The notes under the pieces were generated by a model, which was given only the letters and a program-made list of their open reading frames with translations, had not been told where the DNA came from and made no database searches. A program made the position numbers and the translations under genes. This document shows positions 1-57,399 of a stretch of DNA of 64,000 nucleotides, piece by piece (positions within the stretch are counted from its first letter, which is position 1; each line of letters begins with the position of its first letter). Source of the stretch: Neoconidiobolus thromboides FSU 785 (lineage: Eukaryota > Fungi > Entomophthoromycota); the NCBI GenBank assembly GCA_025603075.1, contig MU626332.1, positions 31,053 through 95,052 on the forward strand. The letters run 5' to 3'.

Positions 1-1630
1 GTAGCTGGTGAGAATCAACATAAAACAAATAGCCCATCTTGTCATTAACAAAGTAAAGCCAGTCAAGGTTTATTTTTAGTTTCGGAATTAAATTTAACTT
101 GATACTATTTGTTATAATTGTTAAATCAATAATAATATAATGATAAGCTTGTTTACCTTATCTCATATGAATTGTATAACTTGGTAAATTCTTGTTCAGT
201 TTTTATGTGAAGTATTTGATTATTAACCTAAAAGCAACGATTAATATATTAGTATATTGATAAACTACTGATTGAATACTACTTTATTAATTAAATTATC
301 TTTAATGATAAAAATACTAGCTGACAATAACTGAAGATTATTTTTATTAACTAGCTCATTATTACTCTCATCTTTATTATCATCTTTGTTGTATTTTTGT
401 TTATAGTATGAAGCCACCAATTGGTCGTTACAATTCAAGATGAACTTTTTATATTGGATGCTTTTGTATTTTAATAAGTGAACTTCCGCTTGTCTAAATA
501 AATCAGAGTAAAATTTAGGATACTTTAAATATAACCGATATATCATGTCCAAGAAAAAATTCCTATTGTTCATTATTAAATTTAAATGGGCTATCAAATT
601 ACCATCTTTGCAATTGACGTATTTATTAATTAATTTACAATATAGCCTTAGTAACTTTTCATCTTTACTAATAATATACTGATACCCTAGATTGCCTATT
701 AATATAATAATATCGAATACTTTTTTGGTTATCTCTTCATCTCCATTGCTATTAATGTCAATTAAGCTAATCTCAGCAAATAAAACGAAGCTAATTTCAA
801 TTTGGTCAAACTGATTAGATTGGTTTAATTTAACATTAATAAACTGTATGATTTTATCTAAAAAATAGTCATAATAAATAGCATCATTATGAACCAGAAA
901 GCGGATAATTTCCTGAATGATAACAAAATAATTGCTTTTTACTTTTGAAATATTATCAATTATCAAATTAATTATATACTCATAATTTTCTTTAATAATC
1001 AATTTTAACATTAATAGTAAAAAATATTTCAAATTACTTTCACTGGTTTGTTCATTAATATCAATTAGATTAACAACAAAATTAGAGTATGTAGTCTTAT
1101 TTTGAATTAAATATGCTTCATTTTTTTGTATTTTACTAATTAAATTCCCCTTCTTTAGCCAATTTAAGTACAAAAAATTAATCTTTTCTTTTTCCTCTTC
1201 TTTCTCTTCTTCATTTTCATAAATCTCATAATTGTTAAACAGATGATTAAAATACTTCAAGCTCAACGCTATCAACTCGTTATTATTACTGTTTCTTAAA
1301 TGATACTCACTTTCATTCTATAAAAAATATAAAAAATATAAACTAAAATAATAAAACATACTTTGAAAAAATTCCTTATATTCCTATCCTTAATATCAAA
1401 CATATGTTCCATACACCAAATTTTCAAATATAAGCTGTTAAATTGGTATAAATAAAACACAAAGAGCTCTTGTCTTAATCCATAATTTATTTTAATTTCT
1501 TTGATCACTGTTTCCATTTTTTTCTCTTCTTTTATCCATATTACTTCTTGAATCTTTTTAATTATATCTATTTATTCATTAGTAAATTATCTTTATTTTC
1601 TTGTCTATTACTTTCATTTTCATCCTCCAT
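1..1630 (-). CDS. Hypothetical multi-exon helical protein; 3' part runs off the left edge
   Basis: ATG at 1630 (MEDENE), GT-AG intron 1611-1568, then an exon in frame with ORF 1296..1517 and ORF 265..1275; further short exons below 265. No family recognised. Confidence 0.6.
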
Positions 1631-1678
1631 CTTTTCAACTTAAAAACAAACAAAGTTAAAACTGATCTTATCTAATGC

Positions 1679-1788
1679 AGTCATGCTTATAAATATTGGC
1701 GTAAAATTCTGTTTGCTGTGAAAAATTATTTAACTAATTTTTTAGTCACAGTAAATAGAATTTTACGTCAATATTTATGATCATGATT
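1679..1788 (+). repeat. Long near-perfect hairpin (33-bp core arms 1689-1721 / 1746-1778)
   Basis: ataaatattggcgtaaaattctgtttgctgtga is the reverse complement of tcacagtaaatagaattttacgtcaatatttat except at 3 positions, all G:U on the + strand. Pairing extends outward (tcatg/catga) and inward (aaaatta/taatttt). Confidence 0.85.
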
Positions 1789-2067
1789 ATAAACTATTTG
1801 ATTAGAACACAATTTATAAAAAATAAATTGTTTTGATAAATTATTTAAAATTCCATAGTTTTCTAATCATCTATCTAGGTAAAGTTGATTTTTTAAAAGC
1901 TAAAAATATTACTCTTGATATTTATAACCATCATTACCTTTAAAAGCGTATAGGTTCTTGATGATACTATCCTTATTTGAGTATCCCTTACAACCTAAAA
2001 ATTTAAATTTTTTGTGCAAAGGTGTAAAATATTTAATAAATATTCCTTAATCAACACAGTAAATAAG

Positions 2068-2140
2068 GCCTTCTTGGCTCAGTTGGCAGAGCGTCCGCCT
2101 AGTAAGCGGAAGGTCATTGGTTCGATTCCGATAGAAGGCA
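2068..2140 (+). tRNA. tRNA-Thr(AGT)
   Basis: Cloverleaf: GCCTTCT/AGAAGGC acceptor stem, TGGCTCAGTTGG A-box, TCCGC-CTAGTAA-GCGGA anticodon arm, GGTTCGATTCC B-box, followed by a T5 Pol III terminator. Confidence 0.97.
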
Positions 2141-2461
2141 ATTTTTATAATCAGAAATACTATAATTTTAATGCAGATACTTAAATACAATGAAACAAGA
2201 ATATCTTTACAATACGTTTGTTTAGCTTCTCTCTAATATGAAGTAAATTAAGTAATACAAATAGTTGATTCGAATAAATACTTTAAAGAGATTAAATTCC
2301 ATTACTTTGACTGTTTTAATTCAAATCCATTGATTTTTGAAAATAATAATCCAAGTTTTTATTTATAGCTAATCACAGTATTATTTGTAGTCTTAGTATT
2401 AAATTTTGGTAAAATTTAAATATTTTATTAAATAAAAAATATAATGATACAATACCATCAC

Positions 2462-3842
2462 CTATTCCTTCCAATTTAACGAGTATGAAAGTGATTTAGG
2501 AACTTGATCAAATGCATCGGAATGATTCAAAAGATGTGGAGGAAGAAATTCTTCTATGACTTGGTCTTCTTGAATAGTTGAAGGAATACCAACAGGCTTC
2601 ATTTTGTTCATATGAATTGGTATTGGTACAGAACTTGAATATAAACTATTACTCGTATTATCTACATTTTCTTGCTCTATTTTGAAAAATCATTATTAGT
2701 TTTTACTATTGTGTTCTAATAATATAGCATTTACCTAAATCTAATTTTATATCATCATCATCATCAAAGGTTGAATACTTCTTAAATCGAGACGCATTCC
2801 ATTTACCCTGAGCTACAAAAGAGCCAGGAATAACAGCGTTTTCGACTAATGAATCATCAGTTTCATTAACTTCAAGGTTATTACTACTGTCTATTTTGAT
2901 ACTATTATTATTATCATTTATATCTTCATCTAAATCAAATAGATTTTCATCGCCTTCGTCTTCGTTAATAGCATAATGGTCTTCATCTGAAGAGAAATCC
3001 GACATTTCCAAGTTACATGCTTTAGGTTTTATTGGTGGTGAATGTATGTCACCAATAGTAACATTAATACTATTTAAAGCAAAAGGATCTTTATTGTCTT
3101 GTCTTTGATTGATAATTAGTTTATTTTCGATCATTTGTTTCTCTTTTTTACTTTTATTTATCTTCTTTGAATATGCTTTCTTCTGTTTTTCAATAAACTC
3201 CTCAATCTTTAATTCCATTTTCAATAACTCTTTCTTCTCGAAATCTTTTAATTTGGCTAATAGCAGCTCATCATCTAAAAAATTGTCAATTCTTGCTCAT
3301 GAGCTATTTTTCAAATACCTTACTTTTCTTTTCAATCCTTTTATCTACTTCATCTTGAGTCACAACCATTCTAAAACATTTGGAATAATCTTCTCTCTTC
3401 CTTACAATTTCGGCTTTTTCCTCATTCTAATTATTTAACAATTAAAAAAAATTAGAATTTGTTTTGGGAACTTACTAGCAAGTGTATATTAAATAAGATT
3501 GGCCTTGTATCAGCCTGAAAAGCGGTTGAGTCTGTAACGTCATAGGCATACACTTCATAGTTGCAATTAATACATTTAGTAAAACTAAAATGGTCTTTTA
3601 TCTCTCTTTTTGTCAGATTAATATATTCCTAAGACAACATTTAAAACATTACATATACTAAAGGAAACTAAATTTACCACAGCAGCTCCGTTCCTTTGCA
3701 ACAACGACCATCTAAACCCTTGGAATATTTCATCATGAACCCCATCATCAGCTTCTTCCTTTTTTAGTTCTGTTTTCAAATTTAATCTAATGTTCAAACA
3801 CGGACAATAGTATGATTTATATTCTTTAGGTGAGCTATTCAT
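2462..3842 (-). CDS. Multi-exon hypothetical protein with N-terminal YCPCLNIRL motif, acidic middle and C-terminal SSSVPIPI...EEFLPPHLL motifs
   Basis: ORFs 3618..3842 and 2706..3224 plus intervening exons. The last exon reads ENVDNTSNSLYSSSVPIPIHMNKMKPVGIPSTIQEDQVIEEFLPPHLLNHSDAFDQVPKSLSYSLNWKE* (TAG at 2462-2464). Confidence 0.65.
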
Positions 3843-4932
3843 CTTTAAAATTTGAAATTGATTTTTAGTGATTTGTGGATGATATTTAGTAAAACTTTGC
3901 TTTTTATTGGTTGTACTAATTTACATTTAGTATTAGTCATAAATGTTTAATGAGTAATTTGCATGAACTTGGGATAGATTTGCGAAAAAGTTTAATTTAA
4001 TAATTTGCAAATATTAAAGTTCAATTTAATAATAATCATTTTGTTTTAAATTCTATGTAATTAGAGGCATTGTGAAATTTACATATAAAATAAGATAATT
4101 TTTCCAGTTAAAAAAGATACAATTATCGAAAAATACAATTAATATAAATCAACGTAATCAATTTTCATTGTATTTAATTTAAAAACCTTACTTATGCTAA
4201 TAAACTGATAAAATTTATTCAAATATATGAAATTTTTGAAGTAAAAATTTATAATGCTCATTGAGTGTATTCGATTTATATCAATAGAAAAGGACATTAA
4301 ATATAATACTATATCATACTTTTGCTATCACCAAGGATCTGTTATAACTTCTTATTAGCTTTAGAACTATATTTTATTCTTAATCTAAAAATTAAAGGGT
4401 TATATCAATAGCATTAGAGCTTATTTTATAAGAAAAATTTAATTATTAAATAAAAGAGTGTTTTACAAAAGTTGACTTTAAGTTATCTAATTTGAAGGAA
4501 TAGAAACTATAATTAAAGGAGACACTTAATACACAATTCAAGTTATTTAATTCCAATTAGAGTCATAGTAAATATGAACAGCAAGCAAATAAAATAAGGT
4601 TCTAAACTTAAGTCATAAGATTTGAGTACAGAAATAGTTAAGACTAAGACTAAAAATAAAAGTCAAATAAAAGGAGTCGAGCTTAAGACTACACTTTAAA
4701 TAATAAATAAATAGATTTATTTATTAAACATATTTAAATATTTTATTTTATTTTATTTTTAATAATCAGCTACATCAATTTTGGAAATTAAAATACCAAA
4801 ACTACTTTATTAATCCTGCCAAACCAACTTGTTTAAAAATATAAAATTAGTAAGAACATAAAATAAAAGAAAGCTGACAAAGAACATATAAATAGATAAA
4901 GATTTCTTCTTTAACTCCTTATTTTAAATTAA

Positions 4933-5919
4933 ATGGGTTTGAACGTTTTTGTTGTAGAGATGATCGGTGATATACTGGGGGTAATAAGCATCTTATTAAA
5001 CCTGATAGTAGCCACCACAGTCTTTTTTCTATGGAAAGAATCTGGGCTACTGTTAGGATTAAGTTTTATTTTACTAATCATATTCTGTGACATTACACTG
5101 CCCATTGTTGGAATAACCCAAGAAGTAGTAACTTTATCAACAAACCATAATCCAATGCGAGATGTCGTAGGTTGCCAAATACTAGGAGTTTTCCACAATG
5201 TTATGCCTATCGGAAGTAGTTGTGGGGTAGCACTTTTATCTTTAGAGCGGTATTTAATTATCAAAGATCTAAAAGTGCCCAAAGTAATCCTTTGGATTAC
5301 TGCAGCTGCTATGGTTGGTGGTACTTTAGTCTTAGCTATAATAACTGCTATTAACCATCAATTTGAATACACATCTTCTTATATGATATGTATGGGCTCC
5401 CCAGTAGGTGGAATTGCTAGTAAGAGCTTATACTATTTCATGATCCTTATATTATTTACAAATACCTTGATTATCCTTTACTGTTATTACGGAATTTTAA
5501 AAATTAGGAATAAAACAAAAACATTGACTGGTATGAATTTAGAATCAACTAATCACTCAAGTCAGTTTTATCGATTAGATGATAATAATAATAGTATTAA
5601 AGACCACAGTGTTACTAACAAGGAAAAAATAAAAAAAGGAGTTAAAATAGAAACCAAGTTGTTTTTTAAAGCAGTATCATTTGTAGCTTGTTATGTACTA
5701 TTTGTATTACCGTCTGTTATTTTAATGATCTATTATAGTGTTATGTCCAATAATAATACAAATTTTACTTTAAACGGGGTATTGTCGTCTATCATCTTTG
5801 CTTCACTCTATTCCTTTTCACTCATAAATCCTATTCTTTTGCTATTTCTTCATAATAAGGTATATGTCAAGTTTAAATCTTTGTTTGTATCACTCTTAAG
5901 GTTAATTCAGCGTAGGTAA
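4933..5919 (+). CDS. Class A (rhodopsin-like) 7TM GPCR, intronless
   Basis: Seven hydrophobic segments, TM2 Asp (FCDIT), TM3 Cys (VGCQ), ERY motif (LSLERY), ECL2 Cys, TM7 LINPIL. Confidence 0.85.
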   Translation: MGLNVFVVEMIGDILGVISILLNLIVATTVFFLWKESGLLLGLSFILLIIFCDITLPIVGITQEVVTLSTNHNPMRDVVGCQILGVFHNVMPIGSSCGVALLSLERYLIIKDLKVPKVILWITAAAMVGGTLVLAIITAINHQFEYTSSYMICMGSPVGGIASKSLYYFMILILFTNTLIILYCYYGILKIRNKTKTLTGMNLESTNHSSQFYRLDDNNNSIKDHSVTNKEKIKKGVKIETKLFFKAVSFVACYVLFVLPSVILMIYYSVMSNNNTNFTLNGVLSSIIFASLYSFSLINPILLLFLHNKVYVKFKSLFVSLLRLIQRR

Positions 5920-18251: not shown

Positions 18252-19838
18252 CTTTTATATATAAAATCAAAATGTTAATCTCTTGACTCCATTTTTTTTC
18301 TGCTGTGTTTGGTCCAACATATTTAAGATATAAAAAAAATGGAACGAAAATGGATGGGACTTTTATTACACTGTTTTGAAATAAATTGGGATTTACTAAC
18401 CTTAATCAACTTAATATACAATTTTTAAAGTATACAAAGAAAGGACTTATTATGCTAGCTTGACCCCCTGCTGAAAACAATTTTTGATATTTTTTGTCCA
18501 ATGTAAGCTACCTTTGTGAAAAAATTAGAATTTGTTTTTAATTTAACCAATCAATGTAAATTACGCATTTTGTTTCGAAAATTACAACCAATTATTTTGA
18601 ACTTTATTTTTAAAATCCCATGAATAGTATTAGAAATCCTTTTTTTTTAATTGTTTCGAGTTTTAGAATCAAGCGAAAATTTTGATTTAGATTTGTTCAA
18701 TTTTTTGATATTATATTTGGTATATTAGTTCACTTCTTTGAACTATGTGAACTAGTTTATTTATTTTTTAAAATAAATTATATTCGATTTAACTCAATCC
18801 TTTAATTATCTAAATAAACTTTATGTTTACATTTTTAAACGCTAAGATCCTTTTTTAAAAAAATAGTAAACTGAATATTCAAATAATATTCTTAGCTTGT
18901 TTTTTTAACTAATTGAAATTATTCTACAGTTCACTTTAAAAGTGACAATAAAAATACTGAAAAAATAATATAGTAAAAAATAGAGCAATTATAATATAAA
19001 GTCAATGTTACTAAAATAACTTCAATTTTAAAACAAACCGTTTTTGTTATTTAAACTGATAACTAAAAATACGAATATTTCATCAACAGAATCAAACTGT
19101 GACCTCAAAAGTAAAAATAGGGAAAAAAATTAAGGTTCGAAAAAAGGAAATAATTATCAAGAACATACACACTAAAATAAAATTCATAATAACCTATTTA
19201 TTTATTATAAACTCTAAACTATGTTAAGTTGCTTCATATCAACATCAAAAATAAACAAAGTTAAAAAAAGGCTTAATTTACCATCAATTACCATTGACAT
19301 CATAAAGATCATATTTAAAAATCTCATTGGTTTTTTAAGATGAATAAGGGAGGAATTCGTTCAATAAGTTGAATTTACAAATTAACACCCGACTTTACAG
19401 ATAATCTATAGATCTAATTCGCTTATTTTATTATCCTGGAGAAATTAGGTAACTACAAAGTAAAGAATGAACATTGACAAAAATTTAGAAGGTCAAAAAT
19501 TAGTTAGCTGAATTTTCATCACTTTAAAGTTTTTGAATTGAGTTTTAAAAGTTCAAGTTTGTATTTTTAATATAAAAAAGATAAAGTTTTGCACTTATTA
19601 TCCAAGATTGGATATTTATTTGAAAGTTGGAAAATTGAGTTTTGGTAAGTGTTCATTCGACTATTACTTACTAATTAGTTATAAACAGTGACTTGAGTAT
19701 TTTGTTGTTAAATACTTTGTAGATAATCACTGTGTTCGTAGTTAATTTAAACTACCATTCCCTATTTCTATTTATATCTTCATTTATTCATCCTTAAGAC
19801 ACTAGTATTAATCTCTTAATTATTTATCTAGTTAAGAA

Positions 19839-30895: not shown

Positions 30896-31732
30896 CTTTA
30901 ATAAAAATAGTTGGTCTTGAATAAAAGTAAAAAATAAAACTTAAAAAATAAAGGAATTATTTTTTTGAATTCATAAACTTATGCTAATTAACTAAAAATA
31001 AAAATTACTCATTTTGAAATTGATTTTTTAGGCTTAATTAGTTTTGGTAACAATTCAATTTCTTTGCCCAAAATTTTAGTTTTTATCTGGTTTTATTTGT
31101 TTTTAAGATCATTTTTATAATGAATTGTGACCAAAAAATTCGAAAAAATCATATTTTTAGGTCAATTTTAAAAAACTATTCAAATTGAAGTTTCAAATTT
31201 ACCGGTAAATAGCAATGTAAAAATGAACAAAAAATCTCACTTCCTTTTTTTAATCACAGTCATTTTTGTTAAACTCATTTTTCGGTTCATATTGTACTTA
31301 TTTTTTTCTTTGATAAGGACATTATTAGCTACTCTGACTTTATCTAAAAGATAATAATTGGAAAGTTGGTGCTCATTCGAAAAAATTAATCTAAATTTAC
31401 AGTTAAAAATAAAAATAAAGTCTAAATTTCTTTTGCTTAGTTTTTTTTTTCATGAGATCATTTTTTGACTACAGATTTGGCTCATTTAGTTTAAAAAATG
31501 GTCAAATTCAAGTACTTTTTAGAAGAATTTCTCTTTTTGAGTTTTATTTTTTAAACTACTCTGCTTTTCAAAGCAACGAATTTAACAAAACCCAAAACCG
31601 AAGCTTTTTATTTACTAACTTATTTAATAAATCTTTTCATTTATTTAAAAGTTAAGCTTTACCTTAACTAACTATTTCTAATCGAAAAGAAGAATATTTT
31701 AATTCTAAAAAAAACAAACTGAAATAAAACAA

Positions 31733-51544: not shown

Positions 51545-52528
51545 TTAATAGAAATTTATTTTCTTGAATTTCAACAAGCTCAATAATGCATCAAACATTT
51601 TAGAATCGACTAAAAACACCATAATAGGATTAATTAAGATTGTCAATAAGATTCCAATAACAGGAATGATGACTAATATTTCAGTCCTTCTATTTTTATC
51701 TAAGTTTGTTAAATCCCATCCAACAGAGATCAGGTTAGGTATCCAGATCGGCAAATAGATAAATATGTATATGATTGCTCGAAATGACACTTTGTTAACT
51801 AAATTCTTATTTGAAAATATACTATTCTGAGCTTCCATTTTAATAGCAGTGTTACTATCGCTACTATGATTACTATTGGACTGTATTAATTCTAATGAAT
51901 TTCTTTTTTGTTTTCGAATAAAATGATGAAAGTTAAAAAATATCCCTAAATAAGCAGCGCCAAATAGTATAGGGACTATTAAATTAAACAGACCGATTAT
52001 GGTATAATATAACTTTCCAGAAACTCTATGCTTAAGACTAGGATAACAATAAGCCCCAGAACCAACAGGATAAAAGTTGAAATCAAATAAACAATATAGG
52101 CCAAAGCCATGTACTACAATAGTGACTATTAGAAATACATAGAAATACATTGGATTAAATATATTTTTTCTATATGTTATAATTTTAAATCGATATACTG
52201 CTACAAGTAATAATAATAATATTGAAGTCATTAACAGGCCAGTCATTATATATCCTGAGATTTGGCAGTACCAAGGTTTGTCAAAAAGTAGCAATTTGCC
52301 ATACAATGTATGATAGATACATGAAAATGTACCAAAGACTCCTTCACTTATATCTATAATTGCTATCAGGATTATTAGTTTATCATTTATATTCCATCTA
52401 GTTTGCTTCCTTTTCTTTAGTAGTATTATTATTAATAAACTATTTAATATTAAGGAGAGTATCACTATGATAGCTAATGCAATATTAACTATTCTATTCA
52501 AATTTTCCGACTCATCATTGGCTTTCAT
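51545..52528 (-). CDS. Class A rhodopsin-like GPCR, close paralog of 44549..45490
   Basis: Shares PWYCQISGYIMT, NFYPVGSGAYCYPSL, YLPIW.PNL.S.GWDLT and ILINP.MVFL with the 44.5-kb receptor. Confidence 0.88.
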   Translation of the reverse strand: MKANDESENLNRIVNIALAIIVILSLILNSLLIIILLKKRKQTRWNINDKLIILIAIIDISEGVFGTFSCIYHTLYGKLLLFDKPWYCQISGYIMTGLLMTSILLLLLVAVYRFKIITYRKNIFNPMYFYVFLIVTIVVHGFGLYCLFDFNFYPVGSGAYCYPSLKHRVSGKLYYTIIGLFNLIVPILFGAAYLGIFFNFHHFIRKQKRNSLELIQSNSNHSSDSNTAIKMEAQNSIFSNKNLVNKVSFRAIIYIFIYLPIWIPNLISVGWDLTNLDKNRRTEILVIIPVIGILLTILINPIMVFLVDSKMFDALLSLLKFKKINFY

Positions 52529-53179: not shown

Positions 53180-53247
53180 CTAATAACTTTCCTACTCAAA
53201 TAGCGCTTAAAAGGTAGAAAAAGTAATGAAGTCAAAAAAACACTCTC
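53180..53247 (-). mobile_element. MITE copy 14 (truncated, inverted relative to copy 15)
   Basis: 68-bp near-exact reverse complement of 53301-53370. Confidence 0.8.
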
Positions 53248-53300
53248 ATATTAAGTTATATCTAAATTCAATCTCGCTTTTCAATTTCAATTCTATACAT

Positions 53301-53399
53301 GAGGTTGTTTTTTTTGGCTTCATTACTTTTTCTACTTTTTAAGCGCTATTTGAGTAGGAAAGTTATTAGTAAAATTCCTAAACACAAAAATACATCCCC
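53301..53399 (+). mobile_element. ~98-bp MITE, copy 15
   Basis: GAGGTTGT...ACATCCCC with non-palindromic ACAT TSD on both sides (53297-53300, 53400-53403). Confidence 0.9.
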
Positions 53400-53997
53400 A
53401 CATTATTATATTTACAATGTGGTCATATATACTTTCTAGTATCCATCTAACTTTTATTCCTAAAATCGTTTCTATCTGCAAAAGTGATCAACTATAACCA
53501 ACAAATGGAATGGAAATAAACCACTTGTATGTGTTTTGAAGCTATCAAGTAACGAAAATACAGATTTGACTAAATATTTTTAATGTTTCTACGATATTGA
53601 ATAGATATTTAATACAGTTAAGTGTTTTTTAACTGAGCGTATTTAATATCTTGACCTATTAACAATAGCCTACATATGAGTATCAGAACTAGTGCTAGTC
53701 GTGCTATTAGATGTGTTTTATACAATATACAATTTATAGCTTTGTTTTATACTAGATAGTGCCCAGTATAGTTTTATATTATAATGAATATAATAATAAT
53801 TAAATATAAATCATGACGTCCTGCATCCAATTATAACCCCAAATGATTGAGATTTAGCAAATCGAGTGGAAAATAGCATACAAATAAAATTTAATTTGTT
53901 TATAAATACCCAATAATTGTAGAGGATTACAAAATTAAAACAATGTGTAAAACTATAAATTAATAATTAAAAATAATCAGATTATCTTTTATTAAAA

Positions 53998-54528
53998 ATG
54001 CTTCATACTAACTTAGCAGCGCAAAACTTTGAACTCACTAATTTGAATATAATTCAACAGCAGATCAACAGCTCTCAAAAAGCCTCTCATCAATTTGAAT
54101 GGTTAGCAGCCTACTTTGATCAAGATAATGTAAGTTTAAAAGGATTTCATAAATTTTTCCGCGAGTCTAGTGAAGAAGAAAGAGAACTTTGGTTTAAGTT
54201 ATCAAAGTATATAGTAGAAAGAGGAGGAGAGGTTCAATTTAAAACGGTAGATTATTTACAACCAAAATTCAACTCAGTCACTGAGGCTGTTCAATTTGCT
54301 TTAGGCTTAGACAAAGAGCTCAATCAAAGTTATTTAAAGTTGGAATTTAGTGCTCTAGAACTTCATGATGCTCATTTGAATCATTTTGTCAAGAACAAAA
54401 TTTTGCAAGAATATGTTGAATCTATTAAAAAGCGTTCAGATATGATTACCCAGCTACATAGAGTATCTTCAACTGGGTTAGGGGTTTATCTCTTCAACCT
54501 TCGACTTTTAGAGGAGGAAGGTCATTAA
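53998..54528 (+). CDS. Ferritin, L-chain-like (ferroxidase centre degenerate), intronless
   Basis: Ferritin signatures AQNF, QQQIN, AYFDQDNVSLKGFHKFFRESSEEERE, ERGG, GLGVYLF; ferroxidase positions read S/F/L/D/Y. Confidence 0.88.
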   Translation: MLHTNLAAQNFELTNLNIIQQQINSSQKASHQFEWLAAYFDQDNVSLKGFHKFFRESSEEERELWFKLSKYIVERGGEVQFKTVDYLQPKFNSVTEAVQFALGLDKELNQSYLKLEFSALELHDAHLNHFVKNKILQEYVESIKKRSDMITQLHRVSSTGLGVYLFNLRLLEEEGH

Positions 54529-55929
54529 TTTATATAAATGATAAGGATTTAGTTTAAATGTGGCTTTGGGCTTTACTTTTATCCGTACTTTTTTGAAATA
54601 TTGGGTTAATAAATTTAATTTACAATTTTTTACTTATGATTTTACACGTGATTATATTCATGATTATATTTATCCCTTTCTTATAAGAGGGGCCTTATCA
54701 GTGATTATCTTGATCAGCCTTTAAGTACTGTTATTCTGAGTAATTTATTTTCATACTTAAATAATATAGCCATAATAGAATATTAAACTATAAATAGATA
54801 AAAAAGGCCAATAATTGGTATTTTTATTTTATATAAAATCAACTAGTATTTTTATTTAAATTGTTTTGTACATCTTAGAAGGACCATAATTAGAACATTA
54901 TTATATTTGATGATTGAAATCAAAAGTAGTGCACAATAATCACCTAGACCACTACACACATTATATAGAATGATGCTAACAACATTCATCTAGTTTTATT
55001 TTTGAATTGTACAATTAATGAAACTATAGGGTAAATGAATAAAATAGTCTATAGATTAGATCAAATGTTATGGATCAAGATAAACTAAGAGGTGCGGTAT
55101 TGAACCTCCAAAGACATTTAACGTATATACAAACTGGGTTAATTGAAAGTCAACGATATAATTATAGATCCCTTTACTTTTTATCAGATAGATCAAATAA
55201 CAAAAAATTGATAAAGAACTAATTTTCTACCGTTGTGGTTTATATAAAAATTAAAAAATTAACTCATTTGAATGAATTGAATCCATACTATTTTAATAAA
55301 TCGATAAAATCTTCCCAACTTAATAATATTAAATGCATCACATTTTTAATAAGAATAGATTATCTCATGTTTGGCTTATTTCTACTATAACATTTTTTAA
55401 TACTCTATAAAAGTAGTTTGGATTCTAAAACTATTATCGAAATTTGATATTGATTTATGTAATGATTAATAATTCAATAAAATTTCATCAGTTTTCCATA
55501 GGCACTTTACTTGACAGCGGTTAATGATACTGATCAATACAATATAGTAATAAACTGAGGATTAAAAGCAACTGTATAAATCTTTTCTAAAATATTTCAC
55601 TATAAGCATTGATTATTCTTAAATCAAGATTAAAATCAAAGATTAGATTAGATTATCTTTGACCAATATAGTTTTACTCTGCATCGTATAGTCAAGATTT
55701 TATTTGTTAGAGTTAAGACATTACCTAATTTCAATTGGCTAGAGATCATCGGCCTAAAACAATTTTACAACCCTTGTGGAACCAACCAATTATTCAACTG
55801 GAAAATATTAGAGGTTACAATGATTTGAGATTAAACAAAAATACATCATTTGATAGTGAAATTTGCTTTCACAAAGTATAAAAGACCAAGCTTATAACAA
55901 TAAACGACATTTTTTATCAAAATTTACAA

Positions 55930-56454
55930 ATGGCTTCCGCACTTGCAAGACAAAACTTCTCGACCTCAAGTGAAGAAGGTATCAACCAACAAATTAATAT
56001 GGAACAAAGAGCTTCCCTTGCTTATGCTTCTATGTCCGCTTACTTTGGTAGAGATGACGTTGCTTTACCAGGTCTTGAAAAGTTCTTCCGTCACTCCTCT
56101 AATGAAGAAAATGAACACGCTCAAAAGTTGATTGACTATCTCAACCGTCGTGGTGGTAGAGTTGTCCTTCAATCTATTGAAGGTCCTGTAGTTGAGTGGA
56201 AATCAGCTAAGAATGCCATTGAAGCTGCATTACAATTGGAAAAAGATGTTAACCGTTCCCTCCTTAGCCTCCACAAGATTGCTGAAGAATCTAATGATCC
56301 TCAAATGACTGATTTCTTAGAAGGTGAATATCTAAAAGAACAAGTTGAGTCAATCAAGCAACTTTCTGATTACGTCACTCAACTTAACTTAGTTGGTGGT
56401 GATGGTTTAGGTTTGTATTTATGGGATCGTGAGTTACTCAAGAGTCAAGAATAA
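55930..56454 (+). CDS. Ferritin, H-type with intact ferroxidase centre, intronless
   Basis: RQNF, INMEQRASLAY, YFGRDDVALPG, SNEENEHAQKL, RGGRV, LQLEKDVN, DFLEGEYLKEQVESIK, GLGLYLWDREL; TATA-like TATAAAAG at ~55877. Confidence 0.97.
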   Translation: MASALARQNFSTSSEEGINQQINMEQRASLAYASMSAYFGRDDVALPGLEKFFRHSSNEENEHAQKLIDYLNRRGGRVVLQSIEGPVVEWKSAKNAIEAALQLEKDVNRSLLSLHKIAEESNDPQMTDFLEGEYLKEQVESIKQLSDYVTQLNLVGGDGLGLYLWDRELLKSQE

Positions 56455-57399
56455 TTTGCCTTCTATTTATAATACAAAATATTAATAAAGTATTTATTTT
56501 TTTACTAATTATTTGTTTAGTATTTAATGTTATCGTGAAGTATAATTAAATTTTTTATAGATAAGACGTCAAACTAGAAGGTAATTTTAATAGTTGTAAA
56601 GTACTTTTAATATATGTATTATTTTGACTACGTCATTTATGCCCATATACTTATACCTATGCTCACTGCTTTATTAACGTAACTTCAATTCAATGAGTTC
56701 AAAAGGTTGTTAATGGCTAACTCATTTTGGTTAGCATGTCACACTTATTTAACCTAATAAAATGATATTTTCTACAATTATTTACTATCCTACCAATGTG
56801 ATTTGGACTTCTAATTATATGCATTACGTCGTGTGTCATTGTTTACTAAATATAGAAAGGTTTTGGTAACAGTACTATCAAATTTTATCCTTAAATATAG
56901 CTGTAACATATATAATCCAGACATTAGAATTGTGATCCATGATCAGTTGTGCTTAAATTAGAGGAAAGTACTCATACATTAATATATCAGTTACATGGGT
57001 AAAATAAATAAATATCTTTGGCCTAGTGGATTACAAAAAAATTGCGTAAGTAATGATGTAATGATGTAATTATATGTAGTTTTCGACAATAGTAACCCAT
57101 AGGATGGTAGCTTATTTTTTTAATTAAGCTAAGAATCAAAAGCGGTGGATACAGATGTTATTGTCTTGTTGATTGTTCTCATTGTGATGATTTACCTCGA
57201 AGAGTTATTTATATAAGACAACACGCTTTGCCATTTGCTGTGTACACATTATGTTTTCTACACATGCTAGATTTCTGTCAGTAATTAAATTTAGTTATAG
57301 CAGTGATATCAGGTAATTTTTATTTAATATAATAAATTGTATTTATAAAAGAGACGTGGTATGAATAGACGCTATAAGAGGTAAGTAATGAATGAATTT

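Follow-up and report, generated by a model that had tools for sequence, protein, structure and literature searches.

Evidence for a ferroxidase-deficient ferritin encoded beside an H-type ferritin gene in the fungus Neoconidiobolus thromboides

Two Ferritin Genes in Tandem

The stretch of 64,000 nucleotides (nt) analyzed here (hereafter the window) corresponds to positions 31,053 to 95,052 of contig MU626332.1 from the Neoconidiobolus thromboides FSU 785 assembly GCA_025603075.1 and consists of AT-rich eukaryotic DNA with 20–30% GC along its whole length. It encodes two ferritins in tandem, in the same orientation on the plus strand and 1.4 kb apart. The upstream L-like gene at 53998–54528 is an intronless open reading frame (ORF) of 176 amino acids (aa), characterized by Pfam assignment, residue mapping, AlphaFold modeling, RNA contigs and strain variants, and is followed by a 3′ untranslated region (UTR) at 54529–54632 in which AATAAA can be read at 54608–54613. 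The downstream H-type gene at 55930–56454 is an intronless ORF of 174 aa, characterized by Pfam assignment, matches to the Protein Data Bank (PDB), tree position and RNA contigs, and its 3′ UTR extends over 56455–56508 with AATAAA at 56474–56479. The two proteins align without gaps at 40% identity. On the 5′ side, TATAAA at 53954–53959, 39 nt upstream of the L-like ATG, and TATAAAA at 55877–55883, 47 nt upstream of the H-gene ATG, are candidate TATA boxes, matches to the consensus only, as read from the letters. When the window was searched by tblastn with four ferritin queries, neither an additional copy nor a relic came to light, and a third relic in the 1.4-kb spacer, a candidate prompted by a DQD-like repeat, was dismissed by the same search.

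Ferroxidase Site, Entry Pore and Fold

Residues were assigned in human H numbering on a MAFFT alignment of 265 ferritins and on a second alignment of 72 sequences. The H-type protein carries E27, Y34, E61, E62, H65, E107 and Q141, which is the full di-iron ligand set defining H-type subunits, together with D131 and E134 of the three-fold pore. It covers the full Ferritin domain of Pfam (PF00210, E = 1.7e-36, 125.7 bits at a cut-off of 24.5) and matches solved ferritins in the PDB at E values down to 4e-58. It is 77% identical to its counterparts in Entomophthora muscae and Massospora cicadina and about 65% identical to those of Mucoromycota, chytrids and mollusks, and in a maximum-likelihood tree the protein clusters with both Entomophthorales proteins at a support of 100/99. 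The genome is accordingly placed in the fungi near Entomophthorales, and its base composition may point to a Conidiobolus-like organism. Judged by its sequence, it is an ordinary eukaryotic H-type ferritin.

At the seven ferroxidase positions, the L-like protein has S27, F34, E61, E62, L65, D107 and Y141. It thus lacks the full ligand set of H-type subunits and, like L-type subunits, has no ferroxidase centre. An earlier interpretation drawn from the letters of this DNA (hereafter the sequence-only reading) had listed the same residues for both proteins, and both alignments agree with it. Its further claim that the L-like protein has lost most ferroxidase ligands is likewise borne out by E27S, H65L, Y34F, Q141Y and E107D, the first two of which remove both site-A ligands, and the 176-aa ORF that it had called intact is uninterrupted and intronless. 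Absent from that reading was the replacement of both carboxylates of the three-fold pore (D131H and E134K).

With respect to the fold, the L-like protein matches PF00210 over profile positions 2–141 of 142 (E = 1.2e-21, 77.5 bits at the same cut-off of 24.5). A set of 29 H-type ferritins from fungi and animals has 52 columns with a conservation of 90% or more, of which the L-like protein retains 32, among them RGG, leucines of the core and the GLG-Y motif of the E helix. The 20 columns in which it deviates comprise five ferroxidase and two pore positions, H118E, A66W and S36W, and, in the BC loop, P88L, W93F and L82F. The AlphaFold model (predicted local distance difference test score 90.8, predicted template modeling score 0.85) consists of five helices at residues 13–41, 48–74, 94–121, 125–156 and 161–173, and superposes on shrimp, oyster and human H ferritin with template modeling scores of 0.89–0.93 and a root-mean-square deviation (rmsd) of about 1 Å. 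The ferritin fold signatures pointed out previously are thereby recovered as a full Pfam domain and a confident five-helix model. Because the model superposes with confidence and the residue map shows these replacements, the L-like protein is predicted to have its fold preserved, with the catalytic site and the acidic entry pore gone. It is of standard subunit length, without extension, insert or targeting peptide, and possesses neither cysteines nor a signal peptide. Compared to the H-type protein, it is richer in histidine (8 versus 3 residues) and less acidic (isoelectric point of 5.9 versus 4.8).

All five cavity carboxylates, E57, E60, E61, E64 and E140, are present in the L-like protein. 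The first four, helped by E140, form the mineral nucleation site of L chains (reviewed in PMC12746419), and in the PDB alignment the horse L chain also shows E57, E60, E61 and E64. The sequence-only reading had regarded this ESSEEERE patch as an L-like hallmark. The patch is indeed there, but the combination of E57/E60 with E61/E64 turned out to be more frequent than any other pattern in the ferroxidase-intact ferritins of fungi and invertebrates within the sample of 265, is found in nearly all Mucoromycota H-type proteins and also occurs in a shrimp ferritin whose entry is titled ‘hybrid type of H and L’. Because ferroxidase-intact ferritins commonly share the pattern, it does not discriminate the L class, and an L-specific gain, considered as a candidate, is ruled out by its frequency in H-type ferritins. 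The acidic patch of the L-like protein is best read as retained, not gained.

Expression and Selective Constraint

Evidence for transcription comes from contigs of three runs of one 2019 study that behave as RNA. They cover both ferritin ORFs plus short 3′ tails, while depth in the spacer is zero or very low. Contigs of the L-like transcript start at 54017 or 54057 and end at 54632, where the X4 contig bears 20 A, this poly(A) site being located 19 nt past AATAAA. The H transcript likewise has a polyadenylated end, with one poly(A) site at 56508 (X2 contig, 24 A). Contig depth reaches 225–550 for the L-like gene and about 1400–5000 for the H gene, corresponding to ratios of about 0.06–0.4, although depth is a poor measure. 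In run X1, a single contig (54017–56203) passes across the spacer, which reflects either read-through or library DNA.

The RNA runs represent a slightly different strain or allele set from the window. In the L-like ORF, eight of the strain differences are synonymous, all of them third-position transitions, and two are nonsynonymous (E173G and G175S), both within the last four residues; against the nonsynonymous share of 64% expected for random transitions, this distribution has P = 0.0065. A similar pattern is seen in the H gene, with nine synonymous differences and one nonsynonymous. Sampled 31-letter words of the L-like ORF also occur in DNA and RNA runs with seven organism codes, at shares between 0.15 and 1.0, equivalent by rule of thumb to up to about 5–6% nucleotide divergence. 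In random DNA with the same proportion of bases, stops would make up about 8.6% of the codons, and the chance of 176 open codons is about 1e-7. Codon bias is weaker than in the H gene, C-ending codons making up 11 of 44 two-fold codons compared to 16 of 33. Hence, the pattern of strain differences, the expression and the open frame in stop-rich DNA show that the L-like gene is under purifying selection now; decay is unlikely and it is not a pseudogene. The sequence-only reading had named lack of expression and neutral evolution as outcomes that would speak against it, and neither was seen, since the copy yields a transcript polyadenylated at 54632 and its differences are predominantly synonymous. 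Altogether, the L-like gene very probably represents a real, constrained, ferroxidase-deficient ferritin.

Two further groups of contigs were observed around these transcripts. Low-depth RNA contigs (k-mer depth of 8–26) from runs X2 and X3 map to 54893–55293 in the inter-ferritin spacer, a segment with short ORFs only (42–51 aa, without ferritin similarity), and may reflect read-through or a transcript without coding function. In X1, X3 and X4, contigs reach past 56600 and continue for 230–710 nt after the H-gene poly(A) site (positions 56509–57300 of the window), pointing to alternative 3′ ends or, downstream of the H gene, to an overlapping transcript.

Relatives and Origin of the L-Like Gene

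A word-indexed search of 5.8 billion clusters for an orthologue of the L-like protein returned only the protein itself, and an exhaustive HMMER search of 1.84 billion representative proteins gave no relative above 44% identity. The top matches come from organisms as far apart as a brachiopod, Mortierella, a copepod and a grass, and fragments and long matches are no closer than the others. In the trees, the terminal branch of the L-like protein measures 1.9–2.5 substitutions per site and is thus about 15 times longer than that of the H-type protein (0.12–0.14). Its position shifts with sampling, joining either the metagenomic protein P0234 or a place near Blastocladiomycota, and is never supported. 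P0234 shares S27, F34, L65 and H131 with the L-like protein, but was rejected as a relative at 32% identity, being encoded on a 1.1-kb contig of 45% GC. The joining of the two is treated as long-branch attraction or convergence.

Phylogeny had been proposed by the sequence-only reading as a means to distinguish a fungal duplication from an animal affiliation or horizontal transfer from a host. In this check, approximately unbiased (AU) tests reject none of four placements: sister to the neighboring H gene (change in log-likelihood, lnL, of -7.3; p-AU 0.31), joined to the H clade of Entomophthorales (+2.4; 0.58), with a second ferritin clade of the Mucoromycota described below as type 2 (+1.8; 0.56) and with animals (+1.0; 0.54), the latter being represented by eight animal H-type (soma) ferritins as proxy in a tree that holds no vertebrate L chains. 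Free trees place the L-like protein neither with animals nor inside the type-2 clade. The clade-specific states that it shares indicate no clear affinity: none of the 7 states of Entomophthorales H, 1 of the 10 animal states, 2 of 10 for the Mucorales type-2 L proteins (both of them pore residues) and 0 of 2 for type 2 as a whole. Regarding the host transfer, nothing positive emerged in its support: identity to animal ferritins (37–42%) is no higher than to fungal ones, the GC content at third codon positions (GC3) of 0.28 is like that of neighboring genes, and a signal peptide is missing. The tandem position favors a local duplication, although not a young one. Most probably, the L-like gene originated when an H-type gene was duplicated locally, and then diverged very rapidly.

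Ferroxidase-Less Ferritins in Other Fungi and Beyond

The type-2 clade of Mucoromycota ferritins (public records P0143, P0153 and P0287–P0307) comprises 23 rows at a support of 100/99 and is characterized by N or H at pore position 131 and K or R at 134. The ferroxidase ligands are still in place in its representatives from Mortierellomycotina, Jimgerdemannia and Bifiguratus, whereas several are missing in those from Mucorales and Umbelopsis. The Mucorales proteins mostly show Y/H27, H61, L/M65 and K141, and other substitutions at positions 62, 65 and 141 are found in Radiomyces, Syncephalastrum and Umbelopsis. Across genera, the ligand-less members are 52–77% identical to each other. Coexistence of type 2 with a canonical H protein is seen in Rhizopus microsporus, Benjaminiella, Syncephalastrum, Radiomyces and Umbelopsis. 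H131 is common to 13 of 14 and K134 to all 14 Mucorales/Umbelopsis members, and the L-like protein of N. thromboides has both.

In the databases, these ligand-less members are annotated merely as ‘Ferritin’ or ‘ferritin-like superfamily’, and in the literature searched no paper describing the ligand-less Mucorales/Umbelopsis ferritins was found. Neither did a described fungal L-like ferritin turn up in this literature, which covers few subscription journals; only biochemical names such as mycoferritin and zygoferritin were encountered. The sequence-only reading, too, had been aware of no described fungal L chain, but the notion of no other fungal case does not hold at the sequence level, where the Mucorales/Umbelopsis clade has to be considered. 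The statement of that reading that ferritin is absent from Dikarya agrees with the loss of ferritin in higher fungi stated in PMC4133162, according to which there is no knowledge of fungal ferritin's dynamics and functions. In papers on Mucorales, both ferritin genes of Lichtheimia have been treated as equivalent storage markers (PMC8065604).

Outside fungi, ferroxidase-less ferritin homologues are also present in nematodes, Octopus, pearl oyster, jellyfish, an amoeba, Marchantia and Chara. Both D131 and E134 are kept in 149 of 195 ligand-intact proteins versus 8 of 48 with at least two ligands lost, counts which ignore phylogeny. Among the 265 fetched ferritins, the combination H131/K134 recurs in fungi, Marchantia, Artemisia and one metagenomic protein. 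Loss of the pore carboxylates thus accompanies ferroxidase loss in many unrelated lineages, so that convergence is plausible.

Other Features of the Locus

The GATA-containing near-palindrome AGATTATCT has four matches window-wide, at 53979–53987, 55357–55365 and 55650–55658 on the plus strand and at 19399–19407 on the minus strand. Hence, three copies, all on the plus strand, are located within 1.7 kb at the ferritin locus, and the first of them lies 11 nt ahead of the ATG of the L-like gene. For the window as a whole, the number of matches lacks significance, as 14 of 100 shuffles reach four, and the clustering is a post hoc observation. Between 53000 and 57500, no iron-responsive element was found by Rfam matching at E ≤ 1. 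Upstream of the ferritin pair and on the opposite strand, an ORF at 51545–52528 (minus strand) encodes a 327-aa multi-pass membrane protein. In the divergent intergenic region between this ORF and the ferritin pair lies a long hairpin (53183–53366), which scores 52.9 bits against the plant miRNA precursor family MIR8643 of Rfam, where the gathering score is 135, and is most likely a transposon hairpin, not a miRNA gene.

Comparison with Known Ferritin Systems

With the vertebrate L chains (FTL; PDB entries 3wvu, 6jef and 2fg4), the L-like protein has in common its length, the 24-mer-type fold and the coexistence with an H-type subunit, as well as the loss of E27, H65 and Q141 and the presence of the cavity carboxylates E57, E60, E61, E64 and E140. 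The replacing residues are different, however, the horse L chain showing Y27, K62, G65 and E141 in place of S27, E62, L65 and Y141. Moreover, vertebrate L chains keep Y34, D131 and E134, in contrast to F34, H131 and K134 in the L-like protein, which also has D107. Vertebrate H and L genes are unlinked, whereas the fungal pair is arranged in tandem, and a common origin of vertebrate L and the L-like protein is supported neither by the trees nor by the AU tests.

The insect pair Fer2LCH/Fer1HCH resembles the N. thromboides locus in that the gene for a non-ferroxidase subunit lies next to an H-type gene. The linkage of the insect genes, to which the sequence-only reading had referred, is documented, the HCH and LCH genes being clustered head to head (PMC3999511), and Fer2LCH is functional solely in heteropolymers with Fer1HCH, their ratio being fixed at 1:1 (PMC4508113). 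While the insect subunits are encoded head to head, secreted, disulfide-linked and present in this fixed proportion, the fungal genes are oriented head to tail, a signal peptide is missing, the L-like protein is free of cysteines, and the RNA depth of the two genes is unequal and variable.

The type-2 ferritins of Mucoromycota, e.g., KAG2201265 from Mucor saturninus, are also fungal, exist beside a canonical H protein and have lost ligands in Mucorales and Umbelopsis. They share H131/K134 with the L-like protein, and most of the Mucorales proteins have L or M at position 65. Type 2 is a conserved clade, in contrast to the orphan L-like protein, which is 33–36% identical to it, and in Mucorales E27 is replaced by Y or H and E61 by H, whereas the L-like protein has S27 and keeps E61. 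The best matches of the latter are the ‘hybrid H and L’ ferritins from the shrimp Marsupenaeus japonicus (6a4u) and oyster (6lij), at 41% identity and an rmsd of 0.9–1.0 Å. These share E57/E60/E61/E64 with it, but keep a full ferroxidase centre as well as the D/E pore and are homopolymers.

A Possible Partner Subunit and Its Alternatives

In our preferred reading, the H subunit, with its di-iron ferroxidase centre and acidic three-fold entry pore, would be the working catalytic subunit, whereas the L-like subunit would be structurally intact but no longer oxidize iron at the canonical site. The latter would be incorporated as a minor, non-catalytic component into mixed 24-mers with H, perhaps at one to eight copies per shell, where it could add nucleation surface and alter the charge of the three-fold pore, with Fe3+ being supplied by the H subunits. 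Such an L-like role would have been reached independently of animals. For this reading as a whole, i.e., a ferroxidase-deficient minor partner beside a working H subunit, we see about an even chance. Co-assembly with the H neighbor, for which the tandem arrangement and the presence of both mRNAs in the same runs provide the context, is put slightly lower.

Several observations weigh against the partner role or the young local origin of the L-like gene. The BC loop forms the two-fold interface of ferritin, and it is exactly here that P88, W93 and L82 are changed. Since E61, E62 and D107 are kept, the L-like protein may show residual metal binding at site B. The pore residues H131 and K134 stand in contrast to D131 and E134 kept by vertebrate L chains, and the L/H depth ratio varies between runs over the range given above (about 0.06–0.4), unlike the fixed 1:1 of insects. 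In addition, the first 19 nt of the ORF lie outside the listed RNA contigs, which start at 54017 or later, and in both searches an orthologue was seen in no other species. Finally, a recent duplication is unsupported, because none of the seven Entomophthorales-H-specific states occurs in the L-like protein and the upstream regions of the two genes show no significant similarity (z of 2.2, equaled by 11% of random window segments), a value at which residual promoter homology was rejected.

Among the alternatives, a functional L-like protein that is not a partner of H but assembles by itself, as a shell or oligomer, for some other task is unlikely, though not to be neglected. Examples of such tasks would be binding of another metal at the His131 pore site, an artemin-like stress or chaperone role, or slow ferroxidase-independent mineralization. 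The extent of change, affecting 20 of 52 conserved columns and including the three-fold pore, H118E, A66W, S36W and the positions P88, W93 and L82, points in this direction, as do the inconstant expression ratio to H, the eight histidines versus three and the isoelectric point of 5.9 versus 4.8. However, the protein shows none of the extensions, inserts or targeting peptides, has standard length and a five-helix fold and retains the cavity carboxylates, and its gene lies next to that of H, with both being expressed in the same samples. We likewise consider it improbable that the gene is the Entomophthoromycotina member of an old fungal lineage, the Mucoromycota type 2, instead of a young local duplicate. 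H131, K134 and L65 are common to the L-like protein and Mucorales type 2, and the correspondingly constrained tree is even slightly likelier than the free one (+1.8 lnL, p-AU 0.56), but the two clade-wide states are both missing (0/2), as are A36, E147 and H168, and convergence is plausible with pore and ferroxidase loss recurring in unrelated lineages. The absence of all seven Entomophthorales-H-specific states would suit an old paralogue, whereas the Mucor type-2 protein P0143 matches the H-type protein of the window better (45% identity, 148 bits) than its L-like neighbor (35%, 89 bits). Furthermore, the Mucorales pair is apparently located on different contigs while the genes are in tandem here, and no type-2 gene from Basidiobolus, Entomophthora or Massospora is among the matches.

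A relaxed duplicate drifting to a pseudogene, with merely incidental transcription, is very unlikely. Polyadenylated mRNA at hundreds-fold k-mer depth, a confident fold prediction, 176 codons kept open where about one codon in 12 is a stop, and strain differences of 8:2 (P = 0.0065) resembling the 9:1 of the H gene all argue against it, outweighing the extreme branch (1.9–2.5 versus 0.12–0.14), the lost catalytic and pore residues, the orthologue found nowhere else and the weaker codon bias (11/44 versus 16/33) that would be expected from such drift. Acquisition by horizontal transfer from an animal (insect) host is extremely improbable. Although the AU test does not reject a grouping with animals (+1.0 lnL, p 0.54) and brachiopod and copepod ferritins are among the best single matches, animal identity of 37–42% does not exceed the fungal one, just 1 of 10 animal-specific states is present, GC3 is 0.28 as in neighboring genes, and the gene adjoins a native H gene. 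Besides, it contains no intron and its product no signal peptide, whereas insect subunits are secreted (PMC4783870).

Beyond the single locus, one may speculate that early-diverging fungi evolved two-subunit shells at least twice, in the type-2 clade and in the orphan L-like gene, with ferroxidase loss coupled to a His131/Lys134 pore. We regard this wider proposal as tentative and somewhat doubtful.

Implications for Fungal Iron Storage

That a ferroxidase-deficient ferritin is encoded beside an H-type gene in a fungus holds. As such, the phenomenon is not surprising considering the ferroxidase-less paralogues of nematodes, mollusks, cnidarians, plants and amoebae, and much of the interest attaches to a broader pattern among early-diverging fungi that has apparently not been described. 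Ferritins of fungi have hardly been studied. If the dual fungal origin were true, the design would be unlike the pore-keeping vertebrate L chain, and it would follow that the non-catalytic subunit gates iron entry or exit and does not only nucleate mineral. Shells composed of catalytic and non-catalytic subunits in fungi would represent another independent origin of the H/L division of labor as well as a natural experiment tying ferroxidase loss to remodeling of the three-fold pore, and iron storage would have to be read differently in fungi that attack insects as well as in those causing mucormycosis.

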